Of a stretch of DNA of 64,000 nucleotides, positions 1 to 52,312 are shown piece by piece. The stretch comes from Klebsormidium nitens. Taxonomy: Eukaryota > Plantae > Klebsormidiophyceae. A program made the translations under genes and the position numbers. Position 1 is the first letter of the stretch; each line of letters starts with the position of its first letter. The notes under the pieces were generated by a model that was not told the origin of the DNA, searched no databases, and was given only the letters and a program-made list of their open reading frames with translations. The stretch lies in contig DF237199.1 in NCBI GenBank assembly GCA_000708835.1, forward strand, positions 1 through 64,000. Direction: 5' to 3'.

Positions 1-38
1 ATTTAGAAGTCTTCGCTTCCGGTTATAGCACTTCTCAG

Positions 39-3000
39 TTGACACCGTTGCGACTTAGCACGCTTTCGCCTCCCTCGTCCCTCTCGCCTGTGTCAAGCCC
101 CCCTTGGTAGGATCATGAGATGATGATGCGAGCCTATGATTGTACATATCTTTTTCATTTTGGCCATGATCGCATGTCAAGGACGTTATCTCGCAAGGAC
201 GTCATATCGCACGACAGTACGAGTTCGGCAAGGCCATTCTGTGGATGCAGACCCCGGACGGGCCGGCAGGGAGGCCGTTCTGGTGGGCGGCGTCCGTGTC
301 CGCATTCAGCGGCAACATCAAGCCTGCAGCGCTCGCCTCCTTGCGAGACCGAATGACGCTCAGGTTAGTAATTAGTGGGTTTTGAAGTCTGTTCTGTAGA
401 TTTGTCCAGTTTACCCTGGTATGAAGCTGGTGTTGAATCAATATCTGGCGATCGTACTTCAAATAATTCGTTGTGTATAGTTGTCAGAATGTTTGTTTGC
501 CGTCTGAGCGTATTTCCCAGAAGTATCGCATCTTGCCTGCGATGCTAACATCATTAAAACTGTTACGATGAATTTGAATTGTATCAACTCGCTTTCCTTA
601 CTAGTCAAATGATACCGTCTGTCTGCTCTGAAAGTGTCGCTTCAAAGTGTTTTCTTTTATGATCAAAAAAATATATTCAATCGTTCCTTTACTGGATAAA
701 AGGCATTGTCTGGCACTGTGTCGCCCCTTGCATGCGACACGTCAATTTCGGGCTTGACCAACCGACGTAGTCCCCCCTTTTACGTATTCTGGGGTCTGTC
801 AATCAGAAAGAAGTAAAGTATCACACCCTGCATGCGACACTCCTCCTTACCACTCAAATTTCCTTTGATGCAGCTACTTCAGGACCGTCCTGCCGTCGCG
901 CACCTTCGAGGTCACCCCTGTCCAACTCCAGACTCTCGTGGCGCAGTAAAACCTCCCCAAACTCGTCATCCAACAATTCGTCGTCATCCCAGTTCCGGAG
1001 CTGCGGCACGCGCTCATCACGCGCGCTGGCTTCGTGAAACCCGCCGGCACAATGTTCAAGAACGAAGACCGTGACTACGTGGCCGACGAGCAGGTCATGT
1101 ACTCGCAGTGGGACCTTGAAGAGCTGGACTACCTGGACACAACGCCCTTCAGGGAAGCGGTAATGGGGTGCCGGTGGGAGGTGGACTGTGACGAAGCCAC
1201 CCCCACGATCCGGGTCTGGGACAGGGGGGCTGAACCGCGGACTCTGCCCAAGAAGGAGAAGCTCCCGGCCGCCCCCTATCTGTCAGCCTCGGTCGTGGAG
1301 TCGATTGTAAACCCCCCCCGCTCCCTGGAACTATGGGACCGCAAGATCGTCCTCCAAATCCGCCCGGACTCCCGCCTGGCTGTCATGGCGGTCCGAACGG
1401 ACACCGCGCACCCGGGGGTACTTGGGGAGAAGTTCCCCCCCATTTCCGCCATCACAGACCGCCTGGGTTGGGTGACCTCCAGCAGCCAAGAATTCGACTT
1501 GACGGAGCGACCGGTCCATCTAGTCATGTATCTAGCTGCGTGCGCGAGGGAGGTGGTCGGAGACGCGCGCGCGCTCGAGTCGTCAGTCAGGGCGGCGACA
1601 CAACTGATGTCAGACCTTCTCAGGTTTGACGGAACAGTGGGGATCGCGGTTCTACCGGGCGATACCCCGCTCGACTGGATTGCATCCGGTCTACAGATAG
1701 TCGCCCGCAGGGTCATCTGCTTGGTCCCCAAGAAACTGGAGGTAGGTTAAGCGCAACCTTTTTACCAACTTTAGAGTCTGCTCTAACCTCTACGAGAATG
1801 TAACCAGCTCCTGTGTTTTGTAGCTTTCCTCTGTAATTAAAAAAGTGTTGGGCTTGCCGTATCTCGTCTTGCTTGTTTTCCGTCTTCACTATGATTGCTT
1901 TTGACTCAGGAGAGTTTGATCAGCTGCTGTGTTTTGTAGCTTTCCCCTCTAGGTAATAAAACGTGGGGGTCGCCGTGTGTCTTGTCTTGCTTGTTTTTCT
2001 TGTACACTGTGCAGGAAAGCTCCATAACAGGACCCGCCCTCATCACGATAGTCTTAACTCACTTAAGTCCTAACGAATTGTCTTTCTACTCTCAGAAGGG
2101 GTTCGGGAAGTTCGAGAAGTGGGGAGACAGTGGGACGATGTACCAGGTCGTCTACTTGACTCCAGTCGGGTCCGAGCTGGAGCTCCCCGACCAGTCCAAG
2201 CAGTACGGGTTCGGGCTGACCCACAAGAGGTTCAAGCACGCCGGCACGTTCACGGTAGGTCCTCTTACAAGCAGCTCGGCCCACTGCAAATTTTCGATGG
2301 TGGAAGTTGTAATAGCGTCGCATGCTGCGTGCGATGCTTTTGTAATAAAGGGGTTCGGCGAAACTGATGCCACTCTCCTTGTTTGTTGCAGACCAGTCCG
2401 TGCACAGCGGACCCAGAGAGCCGGCCCCTGGAGACCATCAACAACATTCTCGAGGTAGGTTGTATTTCCTCACGCTGGACAGTGTCGCACCCTGCATGTG
2501 ATGTTTTGAAAGCGGAGCTGCAGCGCTCCAATGACGATGATATGTGAGTTCTTTATGCACAGCAGTGTCTCAAACTGTTTGACGACTGTAGCAAAGTGTC
2601 GCAACCTGCCTGCGATGGTTGCTGTGTGGGAAATAAATATCTGTGTCGAGTTTGCCTCGACTTCAGGTGCTTATTCATCAGGTACTTGTTTCCGCCCTAG
2701 TGTCACAGCCTGCCTACGATGCCTTGTTCTGTTTCAGACTTTTGATGGATCTTGTGCATCTGCTATGTACAGGGCGCCGTCCCCTCTGCGACTGGGAGCA
2801 CGGTAGCTGTGGTTTTAGGGGAGGAGAACGGGTACACGACAGCTGCCCTGCTGAGAAGAAACATGCTGGTGGTGTCGGTACTTAGCCGCAGGCTGCACGT
2901 GTGGATGGGGTCTAAGGGGCGGAGGATCAGATCCACGCCCATCGACATGACGTTCGCCGAGCGGGCGATGGCGTACCGGGCGGGGCAAAAGCTTCCTGAC

Positions 3001-3654
3001 GAGTTCGACCCGCTGCCAGCAGCCCCCGCAGAGACTACCACAGCACCCTCCTCGAAGACAGCCGGGACGGCAACATCTCGAAAGGGGAAGGAAAAGGTAG
3101 CTTCGACGGGGGGAAAGCAAGGGACGGAGAAGAAGACAGGGCCCAGTGCGTCTGGGAAGGGGGGCAAGTCGGGGAAAGTCACCGGGGGCAAGAAGGGGCC
3201 AGCAGGCGCCGTGTCAGGCTCTGGAAAGAAAAACGCGGCGAGCGGTGCGGCGGCAGCCGCTAAGAAGGAGCCCGCGAAGAGGAAGGGTCCTGTTGCGGCG
3301 GAAAAAGAGGGTGAGAAGGCAGGAGGGAGCGAGCCCAAAGAGAAGAAACAACGGCAGAGGAAAGAGAAGGGGGGAACGGCGGAGGGAACGGCAGAGGGCG
3401 GCGGAGAGGGCCCTGCTAAGGACACGAAGGCCAAGGGGAGGAAGAGAAAGTCCGAGGGGGAAGGGGGGGAGAAAAGAAAGAACGGAAGAAGCGAAACAAG
3501 GGGGGGGAGAAGGGCGGAGAAAAACCGGCCGAAGGGGGTGGAGGTGGACCGTCGGCCGTCAGCGATGAGGCGACCGAGAGCAGCCAGAGAGCGCCACGTG
3601 AGGAGTCACCAGCCCCTAGCCATGCCGAGGCCTTGGCTTTTGTCGATTACCTGA
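39..3654 (+). pseudogene. Multi-exon, disrupted gene of unknown function; C-terminal half weakly resembles a degenerate beta-class amino-DNA-methyltransferase fold, followed by a Lys/Gly/Glu-rich tail; 5' end probably outside the window
   Basis: Phase-consistent exons 39-106 (least certain), 218-363, 874-1741, 2015-2254, 2392-2454 and 2773-~3600, all with AG/GT borders. In-frame stops at TAG ~56-58 and TAA 947-949, and a likely frameshift in the G-run ~3499-3507. Spliced segment PESRPLETINNILE-GAVPSATGSTVAVVLGEENGYTTAALLRRNMLVVSV. Confidence 0.6.
1805..2014 (+). repeat. Diverged ~116-bp tandem duplication of an intron 3' end
   Basis: Copy 1 starts at 1805 (cagctcctgtgttttgtagctttcc...gtcttgcttgttttcc) and copy 2 at 1921 (cagctgctgtgttttgtagctttcc...gtcttgcttgtttttc). 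Only copy 2 ends in TGCAG. Confidence 0.85.
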
Positions 3655-4012
3655 TAGAGGAGCCCGAGGATTGAAGATGCAGCACTTGAGGATTAGGAAT
3701 CTCGCAGTGTGATGGGAACAATGTCACTAGTAGACAAAAGAGAGTGAGCTGAAAGATAGAAGAGCTTCGTAGATAACTAATTGCAATCAACAATTCGGGA
3801 AAAAAACAACGACAAACTAAGAATACGACTGTAAATAAAAAAAAAAAACCACCAACCGACGAACTATTCTGGAATGGATCTGTTTGCTTCAAGCTCGTGA
3901 TCTCATACCGACCGGGCAGTCAATCTCTCGGACTACTCAATGCACGACCGCGGCATGAAGTGACCGTGATATTTGATCATAGTCAATTCGTGATTTCGAG
4001 ACGAGCCGCCAC

Positions 4013-4717
4013 ATGCTAACGAAGATCATCGCATCGGTTGCAGTCTCGAGTTCCATCATGTCCTCACCGGCAAGAACAATAGCTGAGCCGCCGGTGACTT
4101 TGTCCGAGTCATCGGACAGCGAAGATAGCGATGATATCGTCGTGCGAAGTTCGGAGGGGACGGTGGACTTGCGCAATTACAAGCGGTTCGCAATAAGCGG
4201 TGATAATATGAACTGCTTCTTCATGACTGCATTTGTGGTGGCAACATTGAACGGAGAGCCCCTAGGAGGGGGAGAGGAGCTTGCTGCCCAGCTGCGGGCT
4301 GGTCGTCGCCCAATCGACTTAGAGAAAGAGGGGTTGAAGGTGCGCGCAACGATAGTTGCCTACCTGCGTGACCACAAGAAGAGGCCTATCCCCCCGCATT
4401 TGATAACGTCCTCGAGGCCCCCGAGCAAACGGCGACCATTGCCAACGTGGGAAAAATTATACCAAGCGCTACGGGACGAGGACGATTTGACTGAATTCGA
4501 AACTTACGTAGACAGAATGTCGCAAAGCGGATGCTGGGGAGGGGACTTCGAGAAAAGGGTCGTATGGGCGATGGGCCACAAGGTAACGGTGGCTAAGGGG
4601 GAAAATAGGAGGAAGATAAGGATCTACCAACCCCAGATGGAGTTTGTACAGTTGAGAGAAAACGAGGCGGTCTGGTACCACGTCGCGGAGTGTCATTACG
4701 ATGTGTTAATGCCATAA
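4013..4717 (+). CDS. Intronless OTU-family cysteine protease / deubiquitinase-like protein (234 aa; alternative start at ATG 4058)
   Basis: Cys-loop ISGDNMNCFFMTA (cf. GDGNCLFRA), YVDRMSQSGCWGGDFE (cf. Y..M...G.WGG..E) and C-terminal His-loop HYDVL, in canonical OTU order. Confidence 0.8.
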   Translation: MLTKIIASVAVSSSIMSSPARTIAEPPVTLSESSDSEDSDDIVVRSSEGTVDLRNYKRFAISGDNMNCFFMTAFVVATLNGEPLGGGEELAAQLRAGRRPIDLEKEGLKVRATIVAYLRDHKKRPIPPHLITSSRPPSKRRPLPTWEKLYQALRDEDDLTEFETYVDRMSQSGCWGGDFEKRVVWAMGHKVTVAKGENRRKIRIYQPQMEFVQLRENEAVWYHVAECHYDVLMP

Positions 4718-15617: not shown

Positions 15618-17323
15618 GGCAGCCAAATTCGGGCGAAGCGCAATCTTGCAACATCAACGATCACCTGTGGTCAAAGATAATTGCGCTCACAGGAGTTCGC
15701 GTATACCACCCTGAAACAGAGAAACAAGACGATAGAGCATAGGCTATTGATCCCGAGAATGATGGGAGCACTAGCGATCAGAAGTTACGGATTGACCTTC
15801 GCAATCGGCTTTCGAATGTGAGCTGCACACGCCCCTCTACACTGCATGCAGCTAATGCTGATTCGTTTTGGCAATATGTTCAAGGATTTTAGCCGTTGGT
15901 CAGCAGCTTCAGTCATCGAATACATACAATGATCATGTTATGAAGCCCGTCACTACCACAGCATCTACGCTTTATTGAGTGCGTACTAAGACTGGCGGGT
16001 TTGGGGCCATCTTTTCACATAGGACCATCAAGCCATGAGTTCAATCGATATCTGCATGCGCAGGGTTTTAGGCCGGTACGTCACGCAAGGTCAAATTGAG
16101 CAAGGGCCTGAAGAGTGGCGATGACTCATGTTCTTTTTTCACGTTGACACCGTACTCGCAACATGAGCGCGGCCACTTGTGCGGCGGCGTCTTACACGGC
16201 ACCGCTACGGCGCGACGCGCGGCTATAGGTATTTCCCGGGCCGAGGTTTGACCTCGACCGGCGGCCGCTCGACGTGCGACCTACAAATTACGTAATTTAT
16301 CGACCTACATAGACCTCCGCAAAATCGGTATAACCTCGGCCAGATCGAGGTACCACGGTGCAATTATCGAGAGTACACTGCACTGTGAACTCGTACCCGA
16401 GTGCCGTACGGTGCCAACCGTAAATCAGGTACCGGCCGAGTTACACAATTGTCAGACTCCGAGTATCGCGTACCGTCGATTGAATTTCTGCGGGCATCAT
16501 CGACGGTTTGCGGTGGCTGCCTAATTTGGCAATGGGCTCCAAAAGGCCCCATTCCAGGCTGAGATGCATTGACTGCAAACTATGTAATGTTGCACCGTCC
16601 AAATAACGGGGCCTAGGAGTCATGAGGAAGACGATCCATGAATTTCCTTCCGCAACTTGGCGCTTCACACCAAGCAAGAGGCCACCATGGCCATGGCTTC
16701 CAATACCTCTCGTGATGGAAGGCGGGGAAAAGGGCGATAAATTAGAAAGTTGCAACTTGATATTTAGGCCTTGGACTAGCTCCAACCAAGCGGACACCCC
16801 TGCCTTCTCTCATATTTGCATGTTATTTAGCTCTCTACTTGGCTCCATTTTAGAGGCAAAAGTCGAGGTTTTGTGTCCAGTGAGTATAGGGTGAGGTGAA
16901 CAGTACAGTGATGTGAAAGCAACATCAGATTGCATTGCCATAGCTGAGGGAGCAGCTTTTGACGATTCACTGTACGCTGTGCATTGCTCTGCGAGAAAGC
17001 TACTATGTAGTGGTACAGAATGTGGTGCCCCTGTCCTTGAAGCACTGTTGCTCAGTTGATGGTGACGGGAAATCAACAACCTTCTGCGGCATTTCTTCTG
17101 CTGGGCTCAACGTCAGGGGAGCTCGTTGCGGTGAACTTGGTCGGCGTTGCCTGTTTTGACGCAAGCACTGTTGTGAGAGGAGGAGGAGGCACCCCTCTTG
17201 TAGATGTTGTGCATATGACCACCTTCTGAAGCAGTCTGCTTCTCATCGCTGCATGCCTGGTCACTGCTACTCTGACTGTCTAACTGCACCCTCCAGGGCG
17301 TTCCGCTCTCCTGTCTCTTTGTG

Positions 17324-20300
17324 ATGGCGGGGGAGCAAGGGCGTCCGCGTGTGTACTCTCTGGAGGAGAGCAGTCACAGTGACACAGTCGCAGAGAGGCC
17401 AGCGCAGCTGCGCAGGTCCCCGCGGTTGGCAGCGCCGGCGCTTCCGAGGCAGGGGGTGTCAGAGAGCCAGGGATCAGAGAGGAAAAGAGTCCCTAGCCCT
17501 AAAGCCTCGTCCAAGGTTTTCAAAAAGCCTGGTCCTCCCAGCCAGAAATCCTCTGGGCAGCATGGGGCCGTGAAGTCGCCACAGCAGAGAGATTCTCCAA
17601 AAAAGGGGTCACCCAGGCAAACACCCCCGCAGAAAGCATCCCCCAGAAGGAAAAACAAGGTGGAGAACAGTCTGATCAGCGCAGGCAAGCGGACAGGTGG
17701 TAGGAAGCGGCAGGGCAGAAGGGGTTCCGGAAATGAAAGCGAGGACTCAATCAAAAGTTCGGAAGTGGATAGATTTATTGGAAGGATGCCGGCGCAGCCG
17801 CTGGATGCCCCCAGCAGCGAGAGCGAACTAGAGGGGGCCCTGTCATGGCCAGTCCCTGTGGGTATCCCGATCCCAGGACCTGAGAGGGTGGTGGTGTCCG
17901 TCCCTGACTTCCCCAGTCTCCACAACATGTGCCTCAAGCCCGGTCCTGGTGTGGAGCCGATTGGATTGGGAAACGAAGAAGTTGCGTTTGTCCCCCGGAG
18001 GGGTGCGGTGGAAGGGGCTCCGCAGGGGGGGCAGGCCGGGGTGCCTGAAGTTGAGGCTGGGGCCCCTGCGCCAATGGTTGGGACTCCCAAGCGGCCAGTC
18101 ACGTACACGTTGGACAGGAAGTTCCCCAAAAACGCTTCTCCTAAGTGCGACAGTTGCCGGAAAAGCAAAGCGTCCTTCGACACCTGCAGCAGGCGGGGCC
18201 ACCCGCTGGCCTTCTTCGTCCTTGCCCCCTCCCATGAGAGAGCACGCTTCTTGGAGGTCTTTGGCAAGCACTTTGAGAATGGGTTCTTCCCATCACAGGA
18301 GCCCCTGACCGTGATGAGGGCGAACGCAGTGGGGGAGGCTCCGAGCGGACGAGACGCCTCGGATGAGGACCCCGACGCTGCCGATGTGTCTGGTTCAGAC
18401 AGGGGTTCAGAGTCGGATGCAGAGTCGAAAGATTGGGTGTCCAATTCAGACAGCGAGTGGGCCGCCCAACACCCCAGCCAGATTGAGAGGGATCGAGCCA
18501 GGCGTTATGCAGAGCGGCGGCGCAGGCGCACCTTGCGACACTCCCAGGCAGCGGATCCGCCAGTCCAACCCCACAACGCTGAGAGTAACCCTGCAGGCGA
18601 GTTTAGTGATGATGCCGGTGGTTTTCATCCTGAGGAAGAGGGGCCAGCGGCTAAGGAACAGGGGCAAGGGGGCCTCCACGAAAGCAATCATGCGGCCGGT
18701 GGGGAGGAGATTGTAGGACCAGATGTGCTGGTGCAAGCGCCAAGGTGGGCGCATGCGCACATCGTCGCCTCCTATGACGGCGAGCGTCCGGATATAGGCC
18801 GCAGGAGCCAGCTGCTGTTGCATCGGAAGGCTTCAGATGACAGCGAGTCGGCCAGTGACTGGGGCCCTGATGGCGACACGTCGTCCGATGAGGAGCGGGC
18901 TGGGGAGCAGGCAGGGGTCCAGGAAGGCGGGCGGGAAACAGAGGCGAGATCTCAGAACGTCCCCGAGGGACTGCAAAGCCAGGAGGCGGCGGTTACGGAC
19001 GGGGTGGACCTAGACGAGGTAGTCCCGGAGACGGAGGAGGAGGAGCCTCGACCTGCTGAAAGTGGCGGTGAAAGAGTTGCTGGGCCTCTGGGGGAGGCGC
19101 CTGCAGACTTGCCAGTTGCAAACGGGCAGCCACTGGAGGGCGCGGAAGCTGATTCAGAGGCCACTCAAGATGCCGTTCCAGGGGATCGGTAAGCAAAGCT
19201 TCTGTTTCTCAAGATGAGGAATGGAGCACACCACCAAGCTCAGAAGAGGCAACTTGGTGATGAAACTTAGCAGCGTTGTATCTTGCCATTCATGCCGAGT
19301 CCAGGAACACGCTTCCAGGTGCATTTTGTTTCCCTGCGTGGTTTTGACAGTCCACTCTTTGAGGTCCTTTTCACTTCTGACTTTCTCTTAAGATTCTCTT
19401 GAAGAATATTCTAGAACCTTTAAAGAGTTTGTTGCCATATTCCCTTCAATGCTACAAATTGCACAAAGGTTTCTTTCCAGGGGCCCCAGTCTGGTACACG
19501 TGTCTTCTGAATCTCTTCGAGCTGCTCGCCTGTGTTCTTTTTGTCTCGTGCTGTAGAAGATAGATCTTCTGTTTGCTTTGGGGTGTTGAGCTGAAGCGCC
19601 AAATTCGCTCTTCTGGCAGCCAAGGTTAGGACATGGCTGATGTCGTCAAAACATTTCTATGCACCAAAATAACTTGGGACCTCGGTTTGAAATTTACTCC
19701 GCATTATCGTTTATCGCAAACGAATAGGCTGTTACAAATTTGGTTAATCATGCAACGAAAGGAATGTCTATGCAAAGAAGTAGCAGCATACCATTCTGCT
19801 AACATAACCTGGATGATCCTGCAGGTATGGTCCGTTGAGGTCGCCGGTGCGCGCGCCACGAGCAGGCACTGTGCCTGCTGCCAATGGCAACGGCCACGGA
19901 GGAAGCTTACCAGCACAGTCCTCAGAAGGAACGGAGTCGGACGAGCGACCGCGGTGGAGGAATATCATGAGAGCACCGCGTGGGGACGATCTGGAGGAGG
20001 AGCCTTCAGCTGGGGAAAAGAGGTCCCAGCAGAGTGCAAAACCAGGCGGATCGAACGGCCCTGCTGAGGTGAGAGGTGCCCCCAGTTTATTTGCCCCTGA
20101 GCAGGTGGGAAACGAGAACCAGGGGCGGGGGATGGCGGCGCTAGTTGGGCCTGACAGCACAACAGTGGACGAAGGGGCGCAAGGACCTGCGCACTTGGAG
20201 GGGGAGCCAGCAGTTGACAGCCCTGGGGTGGCTGCAGGGAACAGGGGTGCTGGCTGGAGGGGTAGAAGGGTGGTTCATCAGTCAAGGCCTGTCAGCCCAG

Positions 20301-23300
20301 TTGCGGCCGCAAAGCCCTCAGTAGAGCAAGGCCGGGAGAATGATGAAGAGGGGGCGTCCTCTGGTGGGTCGGAAGAGATCCATGGAAGGAGAGGGAGCGA
20401 CCGCAGGCAATTTGGGAAAGTGGAAAGAGTTCGAGGGAAAGCGCGGGCTGGCGGAGGAAACCGGGTTGGGCAGGACGCCGTACTGGAAAAAGCTGCGGCG
20501 GCAGGCGAAAGGGAGGGCGGTGCTTTGAAAGAGGGAGCCTCAGACAGCGGCGAAGAGTTTGGGGAAAGGGTTTCAGACGGAGGAGGAGAAGGGCAGCCGA
20601 GAGAAGAGGACCAAGAGGTGACAGGGGCGGGACACCTTGAGGAGGGCAGGGAGAAGGAGAAGGAGCCACCTGGAGGAAACTCAGCCGAGCAGAGGTCAAG
20701 CGAAGAGAAGTCTGGGGACGAAGAGGAGTCGGCTGCAGAGGGTCAGCCGGGCCGCAGCGCGCGTGTTGAAGTCCCGGGTGCGGCTGCGGGGCAGCATGCG
20801 GAAGTGGGGGCAACACCGGGGGTACTTGCCAGACAGGAACCAAGTACTCCCTTTCACGCGGAAGAAGACTCGGAACGGGTGCCTGACAGTGAAATAGAGT
20901 CCGAAAGGAGGCGTGCGCAGGCTGCTGGTGGGTTCTCTGAGAGTGAGGGGGGGAGTGAGGAGGTGCACTGTGGAACTCAAATTCCGGTGGCCAAGCGGGA
21001 GGCAGGCAGCGGGTCGAGTGAGGCGTCGGAGAACGAGGAGTCGGAGAGTACAGTGCAGGAGCCACACGGAAAGGGGCTGACGCTTGCAAGATCAGGTAGG
21101 ACACTTCGAGCTTTTTGATTTATTGAACTTCCGCAATTTGCATTTGGCTGAGGGCTCAAGGCCCAAAAGCTTTGTAACCAAGAGTTGCTTTGCGGGCTAG
21201 CACAAAAAATCGAGAGGATTGAACTTGTCGAGTTTCTCTAGCTTTCAAGTGGCACACTGCTTTGAGGTCCAGATAAACAGAAGGAGTCCCTGCAAAGTCG
21301 TGATATGTAACACCTGCAGGTTGCATCTTCCATTGTGTACGTCGAGGTGCTTGCATCCTGTTTGACTGCTTTTAGCCAGCATCTCGAACGCTGACACCCT
21401 CTTCCCGGAGCCAAAAGTGCTCGCAAATAAGTTGACTAGAAAGCAAGGGAGTAGCCCTCGTTTTGTCCTCTCTTGGAGCCTGAAAGAGAGCCTTATGCTG
21501 CTTCAGAGCAGATGTCGGATCGCAGCCTTAAAGTCGAGGGGGATTATAGATTTTGCATTTGCAGACCATGCACACGAACTCTCAGCTCCGATCCACCAAA
21601 ATCTGTGATGAGAGTGACTGATTATCCTTAGCACAAAAGGAAGTGGCTTGGCGCTCAAGGGGAGTCTCAAACCTTCTGGCTTTTTGCAAGCCGGACAGAA
21701 GCTGCATTCAAGGGCCGTTTGGAGCAACAGCTGACCCTGCTTCTCTTCACTGCAGAGGCCAGAAACGATGCCGCTACTGAGGATTTAGCGAACGACTCGG
21801 AAGGATCATCGGAAGAGAGCAGCGAAGAGGAGTCTGAAGACGAAGATGAGCCAGCTGCCGGAACAAAGACAGAGAGGCGGAGGGACGGGCTGCCAGGGGC
21901 AGCGAAAGAGCGGGATGCGCAGCAAAAGACGGCTCACCAGACGGACTCTGAAGAGTCAGAGGAGGGATGCAATAGCGACTCAGAGTCGATTGGACGGGGA
22001 GAGGTCCCTGCTGAGGCACCTGTGAAGAGGAGCGAGGCAGCGGGTCGCGCTGGGGGGTTGGGGGCTGGGGCGGAAGCACGAGGGGAGATGCAGAAGGCTG
22101 CGGACCAGTCAACTTCGGATGAAGAATACTCGTCTGACGACTCGGAGGGTGACGCGCCCCCTGCGCCAAAGGCGGAGGCTCAGGAAGGGGTACCGCAGGC
22201 GGGGAGTCGGGGCCTTCCTGAGGAGTCCAGCTCGGATGAGGAGTCGGACGATGGGGAAGACTCTTCTGACGAGGAGCTTAACGACCGGCCTTTGAAGCGG
22301 CCACGGCTAGAATCGACGTTGAATAGCGCACCATCGGGGCCGCAGGCACCTGCTCCGGGGGGGCGGGGAAGCGGCGAGGTCCAAAGGGCCCCGCCAGCCA
22401 GCAGCAGCTCTGGTTCCGGGGAGTCGGGATCGTCAGAAGGGGCCGGCTCGGATCGCAGCCCGGAAGGAGAGTCGGTGTCTCAGCCGGCTGGCGCAAAAGA
22501 TGGACCAACTGAGGAGGACGGGGATGATTCGGAGAGCAGTTCAGAGGAGAGCAGTTCAGAGGAGTTGAGTGAGGGAAGTGGGCCTGCGGAGGGCCCCGAA
22601 ACGGGGCGGGCTGATGCGAACGCTGCCCAAGTACAGGAAAGCGAACATGCACCGGAAGAATATGAGAGTTCAGAGTCCGTGTCGGAGTCCTCGGGGGACA
22701 GCAGCGAGCAGAACGAACGGACGGCGCCTGCAGACGCCCCGCGTAGAGTAGAGCACGCAACGGAAGAGGGTTCGGGTTCGGAGTCAGAGTCAGAGTCAGA
22801 GTCAGAGTCAGAGTCAGAGTCAGAGTCAGAGTCAGAGTCGGGCAGTTCGGAGCAGACGGGCGAAATTGCGCGCGCACGCAGTGTGCCTAGGACGGATGCA
22901 AAGTTAGTGGATACGGCAGAGGGGCCTGCATCGAAGGGGGAAGCGGATTCAGATGTATCAAGCTCGGAGTCCGGATCCGAGTCGTCAGAAGGGGATAGTT
23001 CAATGCAAGGCGAGGGAGCTGCGGGTGAGCGCCGTCAGTCTGATGCGCGAAGCGCGCCCGCAGCCAGTCAGGCGGTTGCGGCTGCAGGGAAAATCTCGGA
23101 GTCGGAGTCAGAGTCAGATTCGTCGGAAGAAGAAATTTCGGAGCAAACCGGGGCGAAAGCGGTTGGGAGTCGGTCGGCAGCCGGGGATGCTGCGGGGAAG
23201 AGGCAGGTTGAGGCCAGCAGAATAGAGGGGTCAGACTCAGACTCGGAGTACGAGTCCTTTGATGAGGGAATTGGTTCGAAAGGAGAGGAGCGGGGTGCAG

Positions 23301-26300
23301 AGCGTGCCAGCAACACTCCTGAGGACAAAGAGAAGCCCTCAATTGATAGCTCAGACGAGTCAGAGTCCTCGGAGGATGACGAGCCTGTGCAGGGTGCGGT
23401 GGTTAAGGAAGCGGGGCAAGGGAACGAGAGCGAGGAGAATAGTCGGGGATCAGATTCAGTCTCGTCAGAGAGCGGTGAGTCTGCGGAGAGAGGCGGCAAG
23501 GTGGCTGCGAGTAGGCCCTCAACGAGAACCGAGCCGCCAGTGTCCTCTGAATCATCTGAGTCGTCAGAAGAGAGTTCAAAGTCTCCGGCAGCTGGCGACC
23601 TGATTGGCGCGCGTTCTGGTTCCGAAGCAGCGCCAGCGGATTCTTCGGCAAGCCAGCATTCTGAGGGCCGAGCAGATAGTTCGGGGCCAAGGCAAACGAC
23701 GGCAGTGGTAGAGAAAGCGGCTGAGAGCTCGAGCTCCAGCGATGGTTCTGAATTTTCTTCTGACGAGGATGCGGTGGAGAAGGTTGGAAGCGGGCAAGGG
23801 GCAGCCGCTGGGAAGGCAGAAACGCAGAGTTCGGGAGAGTCTTCGGAGGAGAGTTCGGGAAGCGAAGAGTCTGCGGGAGGTGGGGAGCAGCCAGCGGCTC
23901 CCAAAAGTGGTGCAACGAGCCAGGCGGCGTCGGGTGGAAGTTCAGACGAGGAGACTTCAGATTCGGAGAGTGAAGAGTCCGCACCGGCAGCAGCAGAAGC
24001 CAGGGAGACACGAGGAAGGGCCCCTGCGGCGACTGATGGGAGCTCGGACGAGGACGAGTCGGATTCGGACAGCGGGGGTTCTGCAGGAGTGAAGCCAGCA
24101 GCAGGAGCGAAGGAGACCAGCGCAAAGGGCGGTGCAGCTGCTGGAGAAAGCTCGGATGAGGAGTCTGAGTCGGACGAAGAGGTGTCGGACGACCAGCAGC
24201 AAGTCGCTGTTCGCGAGAAGGTGCCAGCAGGCGGGACAGCGGCGTCGGGCGGCGCATTGGAGGAGCGGGCGGATCCTGGTTCAGTGTCAAGGGAGCAGGT
24301 GCAGATCAAGCAGAGCAGCGACTCCGTGGATCGGGACGAGAGCTCGGCAGGGGGGTCCGGGGAGGAGTCGGAAGAGGAGTCGGATGAAGCATCGGAGGAA
24401 GAATTGCAGGAAAGGTCAGGGAAGTCGAAGGAAGGGCCAGAAGAAGCCTTGGAGAAAAAGTCAGTGGAGGACTCGGGAGAGGAGTTGGAGGAAGAATCAG
24501 AGGCGGTCAGCGAGAATAAGGTAGTTGCAGCAGCAGAAGGGGAGAGTGTGAGTTCCGATGGAGGGTCCGAAAGCGAGGAGTCTGATCAAGAACGGGAGGC
24601 TGACTCCACTCGAGCGGCGGAGACTGGACGGACGGGCCAAGGTGGGACGAGGGGCGTGGCGAAGGTGGCAGAAGGTGGTTCCAGCAGTGAAAGTTCTGAC
24701 GAGGAAAGTTCAGAGGAGGAGTCGGACAGCGAGCGTGTGCCGTCGAGCAAGGGAACCGATAGCGGGAAGGCAGATGCGGGCAAGAGTGCAGCTGCAAGGG
24801 ACGTCAAAGTTACCGAACAAACGGATTCTTCAGAAGACGAGTCGTCGGACCCTGAGGAGGACAGCGAACCATCAGACCGGGCTGCGGAGAACGACCCTGC
24901 GAATGTGAAGGAGACTCCGATAAGGCGTGCAGGCAGCAGCGAAGAGGGGGGGCCAAGGGAAGGGCCTGACAATAAGTCAACGACTGAGTCAAGCTCAGGG
25001 GAGGACGAGTCCGAAATCGAAAGCGGAAGCGACGGGGAGCAGGAAGCCGCTGCCACAAAAAAAGGAGAGCCGCAGGTTTCTGCAAACGGCGGCGTAACGG
25101 GCCACGTGGCTGGCAAGAAGAGGGCCAGAGAAGCGACCCCAGACAGCAGTTCGGAGGAGACTTCAGAGTCAGAGTCGGACGAGGGTGAGCGAACCGAAGG
25201 GAGGGGAACAGGGCCAGTTTGGGGGGCGGGCATTGCCAAAACGGACGGAGAGAAGGGGGTGGTGGGGAATCAGAGAGCCCCCGAAAAGGCTCCTGCTGCA
25301 CGCAAAGGATCTGAGGGCTCGGAAGAAGAGGCGTCAAGCTCGGACGAAAGCTCTTCAGACTCTGAAACGGAGGCGCCAGCTCTCAAGTCGATCGGCAAGC
25401 AGAACGGGGGGCCGAAGCCGTCCCCGAACGGGAGGCTTGCCAAAGGACTCAACGGAAGGGGCAAAGGCGGAGGCGACTCAGATGGCGACCAAAAGGGGCC
25501 TGTAGTGGAGCACTCAAGGCCCGCCAAGGCGAATGGGGATAACAACAAGGCCCCAAAAGCGGCCACCGCAGGGCCGGAAGAGTCTCCGCAAGTGCCCGGC
25601 GAGCCCCCCCTGCCGAGCTTCAACCTGCTAATGCTTACAAAGAGCCTTTCCCCTGACGCGAGCGCGGAGGACAGCTTCCACGCGCTGCTGGCCCAGCTGT
25701 GGGCGGCCAGCCTGGAGGACGGGCCGGCGCTCGCGCTGCGCATCCCCCCCGTCGACACGGCGGGGCTGGTCCGGCAGCCGATCCGGCGCTTTGCGGCCCT
25801 GACTCCGTACGTGAACAACTTCCGGGTGTGGGTGCTACTGGAGGCGTGGGAGACCATCCGGGTGGAGTACGCGCACGCCAAAAAGGGGACCGCCAGTGAG
25901 TTGGCCTGGCTCAGTGGTTGCTCTATTTTCTGCGTTCTGTGCGCCTGGTCGAGGGTTCGTTATGTCCAGGTTGAGCTTTTGCCATGCTTTGCTGGTGTGG
26001 GGAGTGCTGCATCCATCGGTTTCCCCTCACCGTCACTGTGGTCGTCGGTCTGTCATTTGGTTCGGTCTAGCTTCCCCTGCTCTACTCTTGGTTCCTGAGC
26101 ACCAAAGTAAGAGGACTTAGCAATCAACATAAGTGCCATATCGTTTGTCGAGGCTTTGAGCTCTTAAGCTTGTCGTTTCTGTAGTTTCTCGCTTGTTCCC
26201 CGTGCTTTTTATTACCTTCTTCGCTCTCGGATTCCCTGAAAGGCTCGGCTGTCCCTTGTCTTGAGATCATGGCGTCACATATAGCACCAGGAGAGACGGC

Positions 26301-29300
26301 TGCATTGGCTACTCAAAGGTCATTTACAATCCTCATCGCTCCTGTGCAGACCCGCTGAAGGCGCCCAGTTCCTCGTCCCTGCTGGACGTGTCCGGCGTGA
26401 GCCAGCCGGGCGACGGCTTCTCGTACCTGGAGCTCACTTCCCGCCTGCACGACAGCAGCAACCTGCCCGAGAAAGACGAGGTCGTGTTACTGGAGGAGGT
26501 CCGGTTCGTGGACGACTCCCAGCCCGGCTTTCAAGGCGCGGCGGGGCACTGGGAGCGGGGGGGCAAGACGGTGCTGGCGTTTGCCCACTATGGCTTGCGG
26601 AAGGGCACGCTCAAGGTGCGGGGCGCGTACAGGCCGGCAACCAAGGTGAGCGGTTCGGAGTTCTTTGTGTGCATTTTTGAACGCCGCTGCATGAGGCCCC
26701 ACTTAGCTCTGCGCTGGTTCTTGTCACAGCTGGAGCCCGTAGGTAGCGTTCAATGGGGGCTCGAAGTTGTTGGACTTCTTCGCACCAGACCTTACGAAAA
26801 GAATAGCACGGCTGGTCCCGGCAGTGAACGTAACAGATCGGTTTTGCTGCAGCCCGATGGAGCAACCAAGATCAATGAAAATCATTTGAAGTGCCGAAAA
26901 GTCCTACCTGGGTTGCTTCTGGACCTGTCTTAGAGGCCGTTTGAGGATTATCGTCCGCGTTCATGGTGGCAGCCATGTCATGACCAATGGCGCATCCTGG
27001 TTGAATGGACGGGCTCAAAGATCTCTCCCAGTTGGCGTTCAAGCTGGAAAGTACTTCTCTTGATCTGGACCAAGCTGTTTCTCGTTCTTAACACCAAGCT
27101 CTGACTTTTGGACGATCCTTTTCCCCTTTCTGTCTTTCCATGAAGTTTGCCGACTGTATCCTCTGCTTCCGCTCTTGGTCCCCGTCTAGCCGAGGCGTTC
27201 GTCATAAAGACCGAAACGAGCACCCAATCACCCTTGACCCTCACTGACTCGGCTCAAATCTTCCCCTACCCAGGCGGTGTGCGTGCTGCGCGTGTGTTCC
27301 CTGACCACCCTGGCCCGCTCCTGGACTGCGCTCTACGAGATGGGCGCCAAAGCCTACTACCCGCTCATTCTGGACCCCCAGCGATGGGCCCCTGGCGCGC
27401 ACGGCGCAAGCCTGGCCCCCGAGCAGAGAGCCCAGCACCAGCCGCGCGTGACGGACGACTTTTTCTGGTCGCGCCGGGACGGCCCCATCTGGCTGCACTT
27501 TTTGCGGACGTGGCACGAGAAGGGCCTCGTCAACGACGACCAGGTCGAGGCCATGGCCGTCGGGCTGCTGCCGCAGGAGCGGCTCACGCTCATACAGGGC
27601 CCCCCGGGCACTGGCAAGGTGAGCGTTGAAACACACTTTGAACGGCACATAACAAGGTGCAGGAATACTGCAACTGGGTCGGAGAAAGGGCTGATGGGCT
27701 GTTGTGGTATCAACTTAGGCTGCTACTTGAGATCATGCGGTTCAGAGTGCGCAGGGGAAACACCTTTCTCTTTTTCACTGCTTCCGCAAAAGTGCATTGG
27801 CGAATCGCTGCTGCACCTTGTCTGGCTGACCTGTTCGTGCCCTCCTCCTTACCGTAAAATATTTACTGACATGCTTTTTTTCTTGTCCTCCTTCCTCGCC
27901 GGTCTCCAGACGTCCACGATTGTCGGTGAGCATGCTACCCACTTTACTTTACATCCCTGTCCTTGCCACTCGCTTTGTCTCACTACAGGTTTGCTTACAG
28001 TAACCGCTGCCTGTTGTCTTCCTTCGGCACCAGAATGCCACCTCAATACACCAACTGAAGCTTCTGCCCACGTCAGAATTGTCCTCGTTGCTCTGCAGCT
28101 GAACACCACGTTTTGGTAACATAGGGTGGTGTGGTGCATCCTTCCTGCCTCCGTCCAGGCTGCCATTCATCCCAGTCTTTGCTGTTTGTGTCCAGCCCTG
28201 GTGTCGGCCATTCTGGTGGCCACCCCGACTGCGCGCATCCTGCTGTGCGCGCCCTCCAACGGCGCAGTCGACGAGTGCACGCGCCGGCTGCTGGGGGGCA
28301 ACATGATCGACAAGGAGGGCAAACGGTGAGACAGCCGTTCGAACTTGAAGCAGTGGCTTAGAAGCACCCTTCTGTCCTCTTGAACAGCCAAAAAATGCTT
28401 CCAAACACCGCCCCATATTATGGTCCTGGGGAAGAAATTATAACGGCTGGAATCCTGCACGAGGGTCACGTTATCAAACTTCTGCTTGATTCTGGATCCA
28501 GAGGGTTCCGTCGCGCTTGCTGCTCCATAATATTCTATCATTGTCAAAAGAGTCAGGTTTTGTTAGTTGCAGCTTGCGCCCCTGACTTTCTCCGGGGCTG
28601 ACAGGACTGCAGCGGATCCAGCCCAAAGCGTTTGACGGCTCCTTTTCGTGACTTGTACTGATGCTTCTCCTCGCAGGTACGCCCCCGAGCTGCACCACAT
28701 TCTGCGCGTGGGGCCCCCCGCCCAGGTGCACCCCGCGTGCCAGAAGGTGACCATGGACGCGCAGATGGACACGCGGCGCGGCAGCGCCAACTACCGCGAC
28801 ATGGGGCCCCGTGCGGCAGAGGAGCAGATGCACGCCGACATGCTGACGTGCGCCAAGGTGGTGTGCGCCACGCTCAGCGGCAGCGGCATGGACCTGCTCA
28901 CCGCCAAGATGCGCCCCTTCACAGTCGTCATCGTCGACGAGGCGGCGCAGGTACGTGCCTCGGATGCGGCCCCTCACTTTTGTCTTTTCTATCTGGCGCT
29001 CGTGAGGATTTCTGACGTTTGGTTTTCCAAATGTTTGCACTTGAGATACCGTCTGCTGGTGAACGGTACGAGCAGCTACATGCTGCAGGTGCGGGACATC
29101 GATGGCCTCACGACGAAGTGTCGCGATTCAAGCACAGGCTGTCAGTACCTATGCCAAGTCTTCAACCCGCCGGGTTCAGGCACACAGCTCTGTGTTGACG
29201 TCCTCATTTGACAAACATACAAGTAGCGGCAAGTAAGAGGGCTACTTTCAGAGATATTGGAGCCCAGTTTATCTAACAATCCATGCGCGCTCACTGCTCC

Positions 29301-32300
29301 AGGTTGTCTCGACACGCTGCTCTAGCCGTCCTGCGGAACGCTTCTTTGAGCAGATAATGCTGTCATTGTTGCACCGTTGCGATGTCAGGTCTTACAACGA
29401 CTCTCCTTCTCGTGTACAGGCGGTGGAGCCGGAGGCGCTGATTGCTTTGAACCGGCTGGCGGACGGCGGACGCATGATCCTGGTCGGGGATCCCTGCCAG
29501 CTGCCTGCTACCGTGATACAGCACCCCCGTGAGTCACGCTGTGTGTGGCCATACTTAAGATTGACTATTGAATGTTGTTATCAGGTCGGGGCTAGTGGAT
29601 AATGCTGACACCTCTCATATGCCTCGAATGTGCAAGGATATTGAAAGTACTGAAATTTCCCGGCTTTAGAGGACTCAAATCCTGTTGGCAGTTGGCTCTG
29701 ACATCTCAGAACGCACGCGGCTGAACACAGGGTCGCTTATCTCAAAGTAGTGTGTGGCGCAGCACATTCAAGCTTAATTCCGTGCATAAGCCGTCAAACT
29801 GCCTTCGTTCTTCAGCCAGGAGAGGACGGTGAAGGAACTTAGTCTCGTGAACCAAAACTTTCCTCGATAGGCGCGGCCAGTCTCCTGGTCGACAGGATCG
29901 TAGGAGCACTCCTCTTTTGACCAGAACGGCTTTCAGCGACCAAAAATCTGCATTCTTGTCCTCCATGACACCCCGCTCCTTTGCGCAGAGGCCCCGTACG
30001 AGGTCAGCCTCTTTGAGCGGCTGCAGGCGGCCGGCTCGCGGTGCACTCTGCTGACCACGCAGTACCGCATGCACCCCGCCATCCGCACCTTCCCCAACGA
30101 CCACTTCTATGCGGGAAGGCTCCAAGACGCTGACCCCGTAATCGCCCGGCCCCTCGTTGTTGGGGACAGCATGAGCCCGGATTGTACCCCCCGGGACCTG
30201 CTTCGAGTCTACTCGGGCGACGTCCAGTTCAACCTCAGTCCGTACCGCTTTCTGGACGTCCGGTGGAGCTCCGAGCAGAACGGCGGCGGGGGCTCGACCC
30301 AGAATAACCTCGAAGCGTCGGTGGTTGCCGCGGTGGTTAGCGGGCTGGTCAAGGGGCTAACCGCGGGCGTGCCCGTGCGTGGCGAAGGCGGGCTGATCGA
30401 GATGCGGCGCTTTAACCCGGGAGACGCGACCCGGGGCAGTGGGGCGCCATTTTCGGTGGGGGTGATCACGCCTTACTCTGCGCAGAAGCAGCTGATCTGC
30501 GCCCGGCTGTCCCGGAAGGGGGTGCCCCGAGAGGCGTACGAAGTGAACACGGTGGACGGGTTTCAGGGCCGCGAAATGGACGCGATTGTGCTGTCGACCG
30601 TGCGGGCGGCTCGTGGGGGTACGTCGGGCCCGGGGGGCACGATCGGGTTCGTGTCGGACCGGCGGCGTATGAACGTGGCGCTGACGCGCGCGCGGCACTG
30701 CCTGCTGATCGTGGGCGACTCGCAGACGCTGGCGGCGCGCAGCGACGACTGGCGGGCGTTGATCGAGGATGCCAAGGCGCGGAAGTGCTTTGAGGAGATT
30801 GAGAAGGACGGGAAGAGCCCGCGGAAAGGGGGGGTGCCGGGACAGGGCCTGGGGGGAGGGGATCGGTCCGGTGGTAAAGAGAAGGACGGCGGGGCTGGTG
30901 TGAAACGCAAGTTGGATCTGAGTGGTGGAGACCCGGATGCGGGCGCCCAAGGAGGAGGGAAGAGGAGGAGACTTGGGGGCAAAGGAAATGAAGGTGGTTC
31001 AGGGACTAATGCCGCAGACAGCGAGGAGGTGGGCAATAATTGGGGCGAGAAGACGCTGGGTAGGACGGGGCCAGAAGGCACCAGTGACTCCCCAGAAGCT
31101 CCAAGGAAGAAGGAGAAGAAAAAGTCAGTGAAGGAACAGAAAAGAGGCGTTACGGGTGGGGAAGACGGCAGTGTTGCAGCGAAACGAGGGGGCGAAGCGG
31201 AGACGCAGGCTAGGCAGGGGCGCAAAAAAGAGAGGGGGGGCGACGGGGCAGATAAGCTGACGGGCAAGCAGACCGCGGGTGAAGACGTTAAGCCGGGAGA
31301 AAGTAAGATGGCGACAGTGGGGATGAAGAAGACCAAGGAGAAGAAGCAGGCCGGGTTGGGTCACCCAGCCGAAGTCGAGGATGAAAAGCCGAAGGGAAAA
31401 GGTGCGAAGGAAGTGGCCTTAGAGGGGGGACGCTCCCCTGCGCCAGCTGCCGAGTCGAAGAAAGGCGAGGACGCAGAAACGGCGACCGCCAGAAGTGAGA
31501 AGAAGCGGACGAAGAAGGCGAGTGGGGAGACTGCCGGAAAAGCGGACGAGCCTATACCGTCTGGGGAACCGGTGAAGGCCGGCGTGGAAATAGCGCCTGC
31601 TGCTGCAAAGGAGGCAGTGCCGACGGCTTCGTCGCATGCTAACAGGCCCTTGACTCCGAAGTCAGACACTGCCGACAAAAGCGGCAAGAAAAGGAAACGC
31701 GACCGAGAAGGGGTGGGGTTGCTTAATGGGGACGGGTCGTTATGCGGCGGTGCTGAAGAGAACGGAAAGCAGGAAGGGGAGGCTGCAGACGTTGTGGCTG
31801 AAGAGCGTTCGAAGAAGCGTCCGAGAAAGAAGAAGGAGCGGCCTACTTCCGAACGCCCTGCGGAAGGCTTGCAGGAATGGCCCGCTGGCAAGGGAGGGGG
31901 CGGCGAGGACGGCCGGAAGAAACAAGAGGGAAAGGAACAGGCGAGTACGGGCACAACGCCGAACAGAAAAAAGGGGGAAACCGGACTGACGGAGGCTTCC
32001 GACTTGCTGACGGACCAGGGTGAGGATGCGGCCCATTCTGCCGCGGGGGGGAAGAACGACGGGGGCAGTAGACCCCCCGGAAGTGCGCTTGTTTCCGGAG
32101 GCCCAAGGGGCGGTGTCGCGCGGAAAAGAGGGCCTCAGCCGCGGCCGATTCTGAAACGTAAATCCTTGGTGAGCAAGAAGGGGTGGAAGGTCGGGAAGAA
32201 GGTGCGGCTCGCCAAGCACGTCCACTTCCAGGATCCGAAGCATCTGGTGCAGGTGCGGTACATACCGCGACTGACGAAGGAGGTGGAAAAAGGCGGAAAG

Positions 32301-32636
32301 GAGGGACCGGGGAAGCCGGCAGGACGGAAAAGGGAGCTGACGTTCCAGACATTTGTCGACTTGAAGAAGAAGGCACGGGAGCGGTGGGTCGGAAAGGCCG
32401 CGCCGGCCGATGGGCGCCTGTTGAAAGCCGGGCAGAACAGATCCGCGGCCAAAAAAGTAGAAGGGGACTTGCAGGCATATGCGGAGGGGTCAGCAGCGAA
32501 CGTGGCGGGCAGAGATCCGGAGCGAGACGTGTTGAAGAAAGGAGGCTTAGGATATGCAGTTAGGAACGGAGTAAATGCAAGAGGAACCCGCAAGGGAGCT
32601 TTGCCGTTGGTGGCAGTCTCACCCAAGAAGCACTAG
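17324..32636 (+). CDS. Senataxin/SEN1-UPF1-like superfamily 1B RNA/DNA helicase (~3,697 aa) with ~2,400-aa acidic low-complexity N-terminus and Lys-rich C-terminal tail
   Basis: 10 exons: 17324-19188, 19825-21095, 21756-25895, 26350-26645, 27274-27618, 27910-27925, 28196-28325, 28677-28950, 29420-29528, 29989-32636; total 11,094 nt, in frame. Motifs QGPPGTGKT, CAPSNGAVDE, DEAAQ, LVGDPCQLPAT, QYRMHP, TPYSAQ, VDGFQGRE and RRMNVALTRAR. An additional upstream exon is possible (open acceptor at 17297). Confidence 0.92.
22781..22840 (+). repeat. (GAGTCA)10 coding hexanucleotide microsatellite encoding (Glu-Ser)10
   Basis: Direct reading of the sequence; the last unit is GAGTCG. Confidence 0.97.
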
Positions 32637-36617: not shown

Positions 36618-37154
36618 GATGCTGCCAGGCTGCCAACAAAGGTTCCTGTACACTGTCAACAGTCCCTCAGTTTTATACCTATGGACCAGTAGTAGTAGGT
36701 ATGGTAGCTCTGCCTGGTGATCTGTGCAAGACATGACGCGTGAGCTGGTTATGCTCCGGGTTACGATATAACCCTCCAAAAGCGCCCAGCAGTACACTGC
36801 ACAGTTTCTGGTTTGGGTCCGGTTAGATATTCACATCAAGGGGTTCGGTTCAGAACACGATCGGACGGTCGAGACCGTGCATGAAGAAGTCCCCGAGTTG
36901 TGCCCATATGCTCGACAGAATGTTTGAAGAGGAAAGCTCCGTGCTTTGCATAAGCCACATTTCAGTTGTGAACAGCAGGCCCACTGGCTTTGAGAGAGGG
37001 GCGGCCAATTGCCGCCGTTGGCGGGGAGAGATGCATGGCGGCACTGTTTCTATGTTTCAACCCACTCCAGTTAGACAAAGTAAGACTTTGCAGACGTGCC
37101 TGCAATCTCTGGCTAGCAAAACAAGTTGAACCTGGAAAGCTGATAAGGTGCACA

Positions 37155-49907: not shown

Positions 49908-52312
49908 ATGTAAGCTGCTCAGCCGCTCTGAAGATTAGAAGTGAAGTTGTGCAGAGGTACCTGGCTTCGCTTGTAACTTATTCTGTGACACTGTCTGCTG
50001 CTGCTGGTGGTGCTGGCTAATGATTGGAGAGCCAGGTAAGGGTGGCCACCTAGTTGCAGGGGATCCACAAGACTTTGATTGGGGTCCTTGTTGGTCTGTG
50101 CAAGTTCAAATGCCCAGACCTGTCTCATCCGCTTGTGCATTCAGCAGGGGTAAATACACAGACAGTGCAAGAATTAAGTGCATGGCAATCAATGATGGAC
50201 TGGGTGTGTCAAAAGCACAATGCATATCCAACGAGCAGTGATGTCAGTGCTAGCTATCCAAAGAGTATTCCAGGATCAGAAGAAGTCTCATTGTACAAAA
50301 TGCGGGGCCTTTATGCTTTGCATTTCTTTGCTGGAAGACTCATGTGCATTACAGTTGTTTTCCATACTCCACTAGAATGTGGGTCCCTCACTGATCTCAA
50401 CTGCATTGCTTGATGTATATGAAGTACCTCAAGTGAGATTCCCTGCATTGTTTTCTGAAAGGCCACATTTAATCACAAAATGGTACTGAAGTTTCTTTCT
50501 TGAATGCAGGTCTTTACGCCACATTCCAAGCGACCGACTGCATGTCTCCACTCCCACTTGGTGGCTGCAGTCGCACGTGCATTTCAGCTACGCAGGACAT
50601 CAAGACCCAGTTCGAGACGAGTTTGGGGTCCTCCGTGTGCTTAACGATGACATTATCCAGGTAAGTGTTGTCAATATGGTTACTGAGGATTGTGTGGCCC
50701 TCCCAGTGTGAAGAAACTAGTTTGTCTTTGAAGCCAACAAATGGCAGCTTGTGAACTCTTGATGCTGCTGCCTACGTTGGCGAGTGGCTGGTGATTTATC
50801 TACTCAGCTTGTTAAGCTTGAAATCATGCCTCTACATTTCTTCCTTCACAATTCTAGCTCTAGGCGATGCTAGCTTAAGCAATCACGTCTTCCATAGCAC
50901 GCCTGCAATAAGAGTCCACATCGGTTGCTTCGAACATGCAAATAGTGAGGAGGTTCCTTGTCGTGCAGCCCCTTGCTGGATTCAACACGCACCCGCACCG
51001 GGACATGGAGCTGGTGATGTACATTGTGGAAGGGGAGATGCTGCACAGGGACAGCCTGGGGGGCACCGGCCTGCTGCCGCGGGGGACGGTGCAGTACCTG
51101 GGGTCCGGGACGGGGATGACGCACTCGGAGATGAATCAGAGCAACACAGCCCCGTGAGTAATGGTGCCTGGGAAGCTTCAAGAGGTCCTGGACAAAGTTA
51201 TCTGGATGCAGTCTTTTTCGTAGAAACTTCCTTTTCAGGCGCGGACTCAGGTATGAAATAAGAGATGTGAGGGAACGGAACGGCACATGAATATGTAAAG
51301 ACTGGGGTCTGATGGCCGCTGAGAGAACAGGGTAAAACAGGGATCGATCAGCTTTTTGTCTGGCCATGCTAGTACCTCCAACAGTACCCTTTGACTTGTG
51401 GTTTGGACCTACTCGGACTTATCTCGCCTTGCCTAATCTCTGATCGTGGAAACTTTCTACGGTTTTTTCCTGCATGAGAAGCGCCGTCCTTTTCCCTGAT
51501 CCTCACCTTGTGTCTTTTCTTTCCAGGTTGCGTTTCCTCCAGGTCTGGATTAAGCCCGACGCGCGAGGCTACCCCCCTGCTTACGCCTCCCGGCAGTGCA
51601 CGAGGGAGGAGCGCCACAACAAGCTAAAGCAGCTGGCGTGCGGTCACCAGGGTTTGATGGCCAGCTTCTCAGCAGGGGGTGGCAGCGGCAGCCTGGACAT
51701 GATCTCCCTGCGCCAGGACGCCAACATTTTCGTGTCCGAAGCGGACCCGGGCGTCCGGCAGACGTTTGCACTTGAGAGGGGCCGGCAAGCGTACCTGGTA
51801 TGCATGGAGGGCGCGCTCACTGTGAATGGCGTCGTGCTGGAGCAGAGGGATGCCCTGGAGGTGAGCCGACGCACCTCGCTTTTGTAGGTGCTCCTTAGAA
51901 GAAGGTGCGGTGGCGCGTTTGGAGGGCTCGCGGAACCGGGCTTGTTTTCAAGGGCAACTCTCGTTGGCAAGGTTTTAGGATTGTCGAACTTGGAAAGGAC
52001 ACTGTTTGTCAACCATTTAGAATGGGGTATTGAAGGTGGTTGAATCATTGACGTGAGCTTGATGTTGTTGGTTCTCCCAAATCATTTGATTTGGTCCGAG
52101 TTGATTTGGTTTCAGCCCATTACGAAGCACCTGACAATCTGGGCTCTCTTGGGACAGCTTGTGCACCTCTTGATACTCGTGCACTTCTTGATACTCGATT
52201 GTATAAACTGCAGGCTGTTGCCGGAAATGACCAACCGCTGCCGCTGCGGTTCGGGGCCAGCACCGAGACGGGGGCGCATTTTCTCGTCATTGAAATGTCC
52301 GGGGTGGACTGA
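49908..52312 (+). CDS. Pirin-family cupin, paralogue B; 5' end uncertain
   Basis: AT|G split codon at 49908-49909/50510, at the same position as in paralogue A. Exons 50510-50660, 50969-51153, 51527-51860, 52214-52312. Motifs WWLQSHVHFSYA, FGVLRVLNDD, GFNTHPHRDME, GSGTGMTHSEMN and RFLQVWIKP. Confidence 0.9.

Follow-up and report, generated by a model that had tools for sequence, protein, structure and literature searches.

The left edge of a 64,000-nt stretch of the Klebsormidium nitens genome (GenBank assembly GCA_000708835.1, contig DF237199.1, positions 1 to 64,000 of the forward strand; hereafter the window) carries a split protein-coding gene; a small open reading frame (ORF) that resembles an OTU protease follows it, 340 bp farther along the same strand. 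The gene is divided into five coding blocks, contains a stop codon in frame within its most conserved exon, and bears seven copies of an inverted-repeat motif in three of its four introns (Table 1). Parts of this arrangement had been described in an earlier note prepared by inspection of the sequence, which proposed a transposon-borne, inactive DNA methyltransferase. Here we analyze the gene, its relatives, and its surroundings.

Joined together, the five blocks amount to 2088 nt, or 696 codons in frame, by arithmetic on their lengths (245-363 + 874-1741 + 2096-2254 + 2392-2454 + 2773-3651), with coding block 1 passing two bases on to exon 2. GC content at third codon positions (GC3) lies between 0.77 and 0.92 across the exons, against an overall GC content of 0.41 to 0.50 in the four introns; the 3′ flank has 0.43. 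All four donors are near consensus, and each acceptor consists of a pyrimidine-rich tract that closes with CAG. We weighed these features against the possibility that there is no gene here, only random ORF fragments linked by random GT-AG pairs. That reading is effectively refuted: exon 2 has homologs with E values down to 3.8e-76 (1e-101 with a family profile), composition changes abruptly between exons and introns, and four strong consensus donors fall exactly at the frame breaks. The split gene with GT-AG introns is real. The earlier note was thus right that a multi-exon gene lay hidden behind what appeared only as ORF fragments, and five blocks, canonical splice sites, and the composition contrast bear it out; its six in-frame exons, however, do not stand. 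The first of them (39-107) lacks an ATG, has its GT at 107-108, and is out of frame when continued via 182-363 into exon 2. Three peptides quoted in the note are indeed present, namely SDLLRFDGTVGIAV (1610-1651), PESRPLETINNILE (2413-2454), and GSTVAVVLGEENGY...VVSV (2794-2880).

No homolog reaches coding block 1, and the start at 245 is therefore putative. The 3′ end of the gene is ambiguous, as past the G-runs at 3463-3469 and 3500-3507 an alternative frame keeps the Lys/Gly/Glu composition up to 3671-3673. Intron 2 contains a 72-nt direct repeat (1794-1865 and 1910-1981; 76% identical, spacing 116 nt).

The in-frame TAA of exon 2 is flanked by aligned sequence: the relative P0001 matches on both sides of it and has sense codons at that position, so the stop cuts conserved coding sequence. 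Because it falls where relatives read through, the window copy is, to judge from the alignment, probably decaying. A short intron that would excise the TAA was tried and rejected, the sole GT...AG pair there being 47 nt apart and frame-breaking. The stop bears directly on a rival explanation, that this is an ordinary lineage-restricted host gene, still functional. On this view the TAA would reflect an assembly error or a strain polymorphism, or would be bypassed by initiation at the Met at position 1052, and the intronic motif would act in splicing or expression of this particular gene. We consider this rival possible but somewhat unlikely. Host-like GC3 and splice sites speak for it; the location of the stop, where relatives stay coding, speaks against it.

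Relatives were recovered with exon 2. A word-based search found P0001 and P0002 at 50-53% identity (best E value, 3.8e-76); identity to P0001-P0003 together is 50-56%, and about a dozen further relatives are more distant. When 1.84 billion representatives were searched with a profile, 15 proteins were returned at E ≤ 0.001 (best, 1e-101), one of them a leucine-rich-repeat false positive. The remaining matches are exon-sized ORFs, none of them full length, on contigs of eukaryotic character in Logan, ENA, NCBI, and JGI, and a further profile search added more exon-sized fragments of the family. The family is rare. Its members have no Pfam domain, and their source names say nothing beyond "hypothetical protein." The search of the 1.84 billion representatives turned up no plant or other algal orthologs, which counts against a lineage-restricted host gene. 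Two metagenome scans, one with the family alignment and one with P0020, returned nothing, and a scan of viral contigs with the family found no relatives. When PDB sequences were searched, whether with individual pieces or with profiles of the family, only noise was returned (influenza PB2 at E > 0.05, and adseverin), and a search of the ESM Atlas with exon 2 was uninformative, with a best score of 0.80. An origin from a giant virus was rejected, given the spliceosomal introns, the host-like GC3, and the failure to find viral relatives.

The relatives also retain traces of splicing. In these sequences, Ser or Arg (AGN codons) invariably stands directly before the conserved YFR/YLR with which the exon opens, and the ORFs read on as "VS" straight after the domain, as in read-through of a GTnAGy donor. 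An acceptor AG plus one exon base would yield the AGN codons, and the donor would yield "VS"; the introns flanking exon 2 are read as conserved. Their positions are common to branches less than 30% identical. This marks the family as an ancient eukaryotic gene with introns, a point in favor of a host gene, and if it is mobile, it moves as DNA. Any spread of the family would have occurred as DNA and not through RNA.

Copy number differs between the branches. The Klebsormidium-like branch comprises four known sequences, which are 50-56% identical. A second, diverged branch (P0025-P0064, from JGI contigs of a eukaryote) contains 90% clusters of 24 (P0025) and 12 (P0028) sequences and about a dozen more clusters. 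It is spread over ~40 contigs of 1.4-156 kb, with near-identical copies, many of them truncated or internally deleted. From its sequences, this branch looks like the signature of a repeat that is proliferating, actively or until recently. Dozens of near-identical and truncated copies within one branch would be unusual for a host gene.

The introns provide a further feature. Introns 1, 3, and 4, and only these, contain seven same-strand copies of an inverted repeat of ~24 nt, with 8-nt arms, GTGTCGCA and TGCGA(C/T)(A/G)C, that flank a conserved 7-nt center, nCCTGCn. A pattern search gave 7 sense matches where 0.24 were expected, and a position weight matrix scan of both strands of the 64-kb window found the motif nowhere else; a scan of viral contigs with the motif likewise found nothing. 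This intronic inverted-repeat array is a previously unreported feature. Of the arm positions, 89% can pair. We found no compensatory change among the copies and for that reason rejected the idea that selection maintains a structured RNA at the motif; Rfam had no match within positions 1-4100. The 3′ arm of the consensus pairs via G·U wobbles on the sense RNA only, which is in keeping with an expression or splicing signal in a host gene. The copies may serve as docking sites for a protein encoded by the element, or as a signal in the pre-mRNA.

Table 1 Features at the left edge of the window. A slash marks the splice junction.
Feature	Position	Strand	Description
Coding block 1	245-363	+	Putative first block; ATG at 245, frame 2 open, GC3 0.85; donor CAG/GTTAGT (GT at 364-365)
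Intron 1	364-873	+	510 nt, GC 0.41, GT...AG ends; motif copies at 525, 720, 820
Premature stop TAA	947-949	+	In frame in exon 2, within conserved coding sequence
Exon 2	874-1741	+	Conserved family core; acceptor ...TGCAG/C, donor GAG/GTAGGT, GC3 0.78
Intron 2	1742-2095	+	354 nt; no inverted-repeat motif
Exon 3	2096-2254	+	53 codons; acceptor CTCAG/, donor ACG/GTAGGT, GC3 0.92
Intron 3	2255-2391	+	137 nt; single motif copy at 2317
Exon 4	2392-2454	+	21 codons; acceptor TTGCAG/, donor GAG/GTAGGT, GC3 0.81
Intron 4	2455-2772	+	318 nt; motif copies at 2484, 2598, 2702
Exon 5	2773-3654	+	Acceptor GTACAG/; frame 1 to stop at 3652-3654
Inverted-repeat motif copies	525-542, 720-737, 820-837, 2317-2334, 2484-2501, 2598-2615, 2702-2719	+	Located by pattern search
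TGTAA + AATAAA, then A-run	3830-3839	+	Likely polyadenylation signals
OTU-like ORF	4013-4717	+	234 codons; GDNMNCFF (NCFF) at residue 67, WGG at 175, CHYD at 227

Our preferred interpretation, to which we assign about an even chance, is that the gene is a probably decaying copy from an intron-bearing eukaryotic orphan family and behaves like a passenger of a DNA-level repeat or transposon. Several points weigh against it. The window, which has the gene at its left edge and so covers its downstream side, yielded neither a transposase or Rep-helicase nor a terminal inverted repeat or long terminal repeat, and this lack of transposon hallmarks favors a host gene. From 4.7 to 17 kb, no scanned ORF had a Pfam match, and the helicase gene beyond 17 kb is host-type. 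The Klebsormidium-like branch, the closest one, looks low-copy, again as a host gene might. A large tandem gene family would look the same as the multi-copy JGI branch, the TAA may have arisen in assembly or be avoided by a translation start at the Met at position 1052, and the motif could be ordinary intronic repeat DNA. The earlier note had gone further and suggested that the gene could belong to a transposon-borne module together with the OTU protease. A multi-copy branch and the OTU-like neighbor are consistent with such a module; no transposase or Rep-helicase was found in the 17 kb downstream and no terminal repeats were found, and no long direct or inverted repeats bound the region.

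The product of the gene, at ~696 codons, is predicted to have four parts. Its N-terminal region, in which a pair of Cys residues is conserved (CRW-x-DC), would be followed by an alpha/beta sandwich domain, in which the segments WVTS and VHLV are nearly invariant, by two short beta-rich exons, and by a Lys/Gly/Ala/Glu-rich tail of ~200 residues, of a type that binds nucleic acid or chromatin non-specifically and may do so here. Exon 5 opens with ~85 ordinary residues that include a strand-loop-helix-strand segment, and the low-complexity tail (G 21%, K 21%, A 15%, E 11%) starts at about position 3031. No homolog was recovered when the opening 95 residues of exon 5 served as query, a weak blank given the length window and word filter of the search.

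For the C-terminal half, which extends from the last part of exon 2 into exon 5, the earlier note had proposed a dead beta-class N6/N4 methyltransferase fold, carried by a transposon along with the OTU protease as a chromatin or anti-silencing module. We regard that complete reading as quite improbable, and a beta-class DNA methyltransferase relationship, which is not supported, as very improbable. By eye, exon 4 and the start of exon 5 do resemble the spacing of motif X and motif I. The note was also correct that motif IV, (D/S/N)PP(Y/F) (i.e. DPPY), and the motif I FxGxG are absent from all exon translations, an absence that itself tells against the assignment. The proposed kinship fails Pfam, PDB, profile-profile, and shuffle tests. 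Neither PF01555 nor any other Pfam family matched any exon, sub-region, or the 18 family members examined, even at E ≤ 10, and no methyltransferase was among the PDB sequence matches. We built a reference profile for PF01555 from 11 genuine enzymes (E. coli YhdJ and ten phage enzymes); aligned to it with hhalign, the family gave a probability of 0.25% at E 0.25, with unrelated motifs superposed. In a piece-by-piece comparison with a methyltransferase hidden Markov model, the C-terminal half of exon 2 scored -3.0 bits, a score equaled or beaten by 51 of 500 shuffled sequences; exon 3, exon 4, and the beginning of exon 5 produced no alignment. Likeness to the beta-class N6/N4 DNA methyltransferases (PF01555, e.g. 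E. coli YhdJ) is thus confined to a hydrophobic pattern and spacing seen by eye, while their defining motifs and every profile test fail for this gene. The case is a caution, as a methyltransferase motif match made by eye did not survive profile tests.

Structure prediction offers at most a weak hint of a broader methyltransferase-like fold. An AlphaFold model of exon 2 built with 18 sequences reached a predicted local distance difference test score (pLDDT) of 65 and a predicted template modeling score (pTM) of 0.42; for the C-terminal half of exon 2, with 24 sequences, the values were 69 and 0.62, and the model has three strands and four helices. VIA-align neighbors of both exon-2 models are mostly S-adenosylmethionine (SAM) methyltransferases, including the amino-methyltransferases aTrm11, TrmN, RsmC, and PrmC, and distant branches of the family (P0004-P0007) have a strand followed by G-x-G; both observations favor the proposal of the earlier note. 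That G-x-G is lacking in the window copy and its close relatives. Foldseek disagrees with VIA-align: searches of the PDB and BFVD with the exon-2 models returned nothing at E ≤ 0.1, and the top rows, all non-significant, were AAA+ clamp loaders, arginase, and a B12-binding-like domain. Compared with the class-I SAM methyltransferase fold (aTrm11 5e72, FtsJ-like 3dou, TrmN 3tma), the gene shows no sequence similarity and further differences: the window copy has no SAM-binding Gly loop, three strands are predicted instead of a seven-stranded sheet, and Z lies under the range typical of unmatched models. We tentatively describe the exon-2 domain, on the strength of these models, as an alpha/beta sandwich that is possibly methyltransferase-like.

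The OTU-like ORF has a catalytic Cys motif (GDNxNC), a WGG, and a C-terminal His motif (HYD) in the order found in OTU proteases. The three best named clusters in the ESM Atlas carry PF02338 at scores of 0.87-0.88, a lead only, since the tool draws its line at 0.9. The ORF had no Pfam match at E ≤ 10 and no PDB sequence match at E ≤ 1. An OTU protease beside the gene, as the earlier note had it, has motif order and the Atlas lead in its favor but lacks a profile match. OTU domains are known from Ginger1 transposases and some Helitron proteins (PMC2836005), which lends some support to a transposon-borne module that would include a methyltransferase fold. The ORF described here has the same Cys/His pattern as those transposon proteases; it differs from them in being a separate small ORF rather than a domain of a transposase, and in having no Pfam match.

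Farther along the window, positions 17321-32636 (+) form a very large gene region encoding a superfamily 1 (SF1) helicase (AAA_11, 27277-28116; AAA_12, 30069-32633), within which lie long purine-rich ORFs lacking Pfam matches, such as one of 1459 codons at 21719-26098. Two long ORFs on the reverse strand, also unmatched in Pfam, lie in strongly skewed DNA (34299-36797, 832 codons; 56483-59302, 939 codons). A C2H2 zinc-finger ORF occupies 42558-43241 (-; zf-C2H2_2, E 2e-17). A 91-nt unit is duplicated in tandem at 45450-45631 (91% identical), and a 164-nt direct repeat (47033-47196 and 51702-51865; 75% identical) has its copies 4.7 kb apart.

As it stands, the locus is mainly a point of annotation: a genuine gene from an orphan family, though a broken one. 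The nearest known system in concept, compared here by description only, would be the PAG cassette, three accessory genes (PAG1-3) that a 2025 preprint reports from giant red-algal transposons (bioRxiv 10.1101/2025.02.11.637652). Its hosts are giant algal DNA transposons of the Plavaka, Mutator, and Zisupton groups. PAG1 has an unknown function and no recognizable domain, PAG2 combines a PF01555 methylase with SET, and PAG3 joins a ParB-like domain to a 2-oxoglutarate (2OG) oxygenase; inverted-repeat arrays adjoin PAG3, for which self-binding has been proposed (10.1101/2025.02.11.637652). The present gene differs in that signal for PF01555, SET, ParB, or 2OG oxygenase is absent from every exon, that no transposase was found near it within the window, and that its repeats are dispersed across introns instead of forming a tandem array. 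The likenesses are several. Both cases involve non-transposase genes in algae, and PAG1, too, is without a recognizable domain. PAG2 contains the very fold that the earlier note proposed, a PF01555-type adenine methylase, and the existence of such a methylase-SET accessory gene in giant algal transposons is a point in favor of that proposal. Inverted repeats lie beside an accessory gene there and, in seven copies, within introns here. Most copies of those elements are degenerate, and the window copy has a premature stop. Should the family prove to be a passenger of transposons, equipped with docking motifs of its own, the recent idea that genes carried by giant algal transposons act on the DNA of those transposons, by binding and perhaps by modifying it, would apply to streptophyte algae as well, and a compact, testable pair of motif and protein would be at hand. 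A bolder version, which we hold to be unlikely, is that the gene, the intronic repeats, and the OTU-like ORF form the right-hand part of an undescribed lineage of streptophyte-algal DNA transposons, whose accessory protein would recognize or mark the DNA of the element via the repeats by means of a Rossmann/methyltransferase-derived domain and a basic tail, as a green-lineage counterpart of the red-algal PAG cassette.

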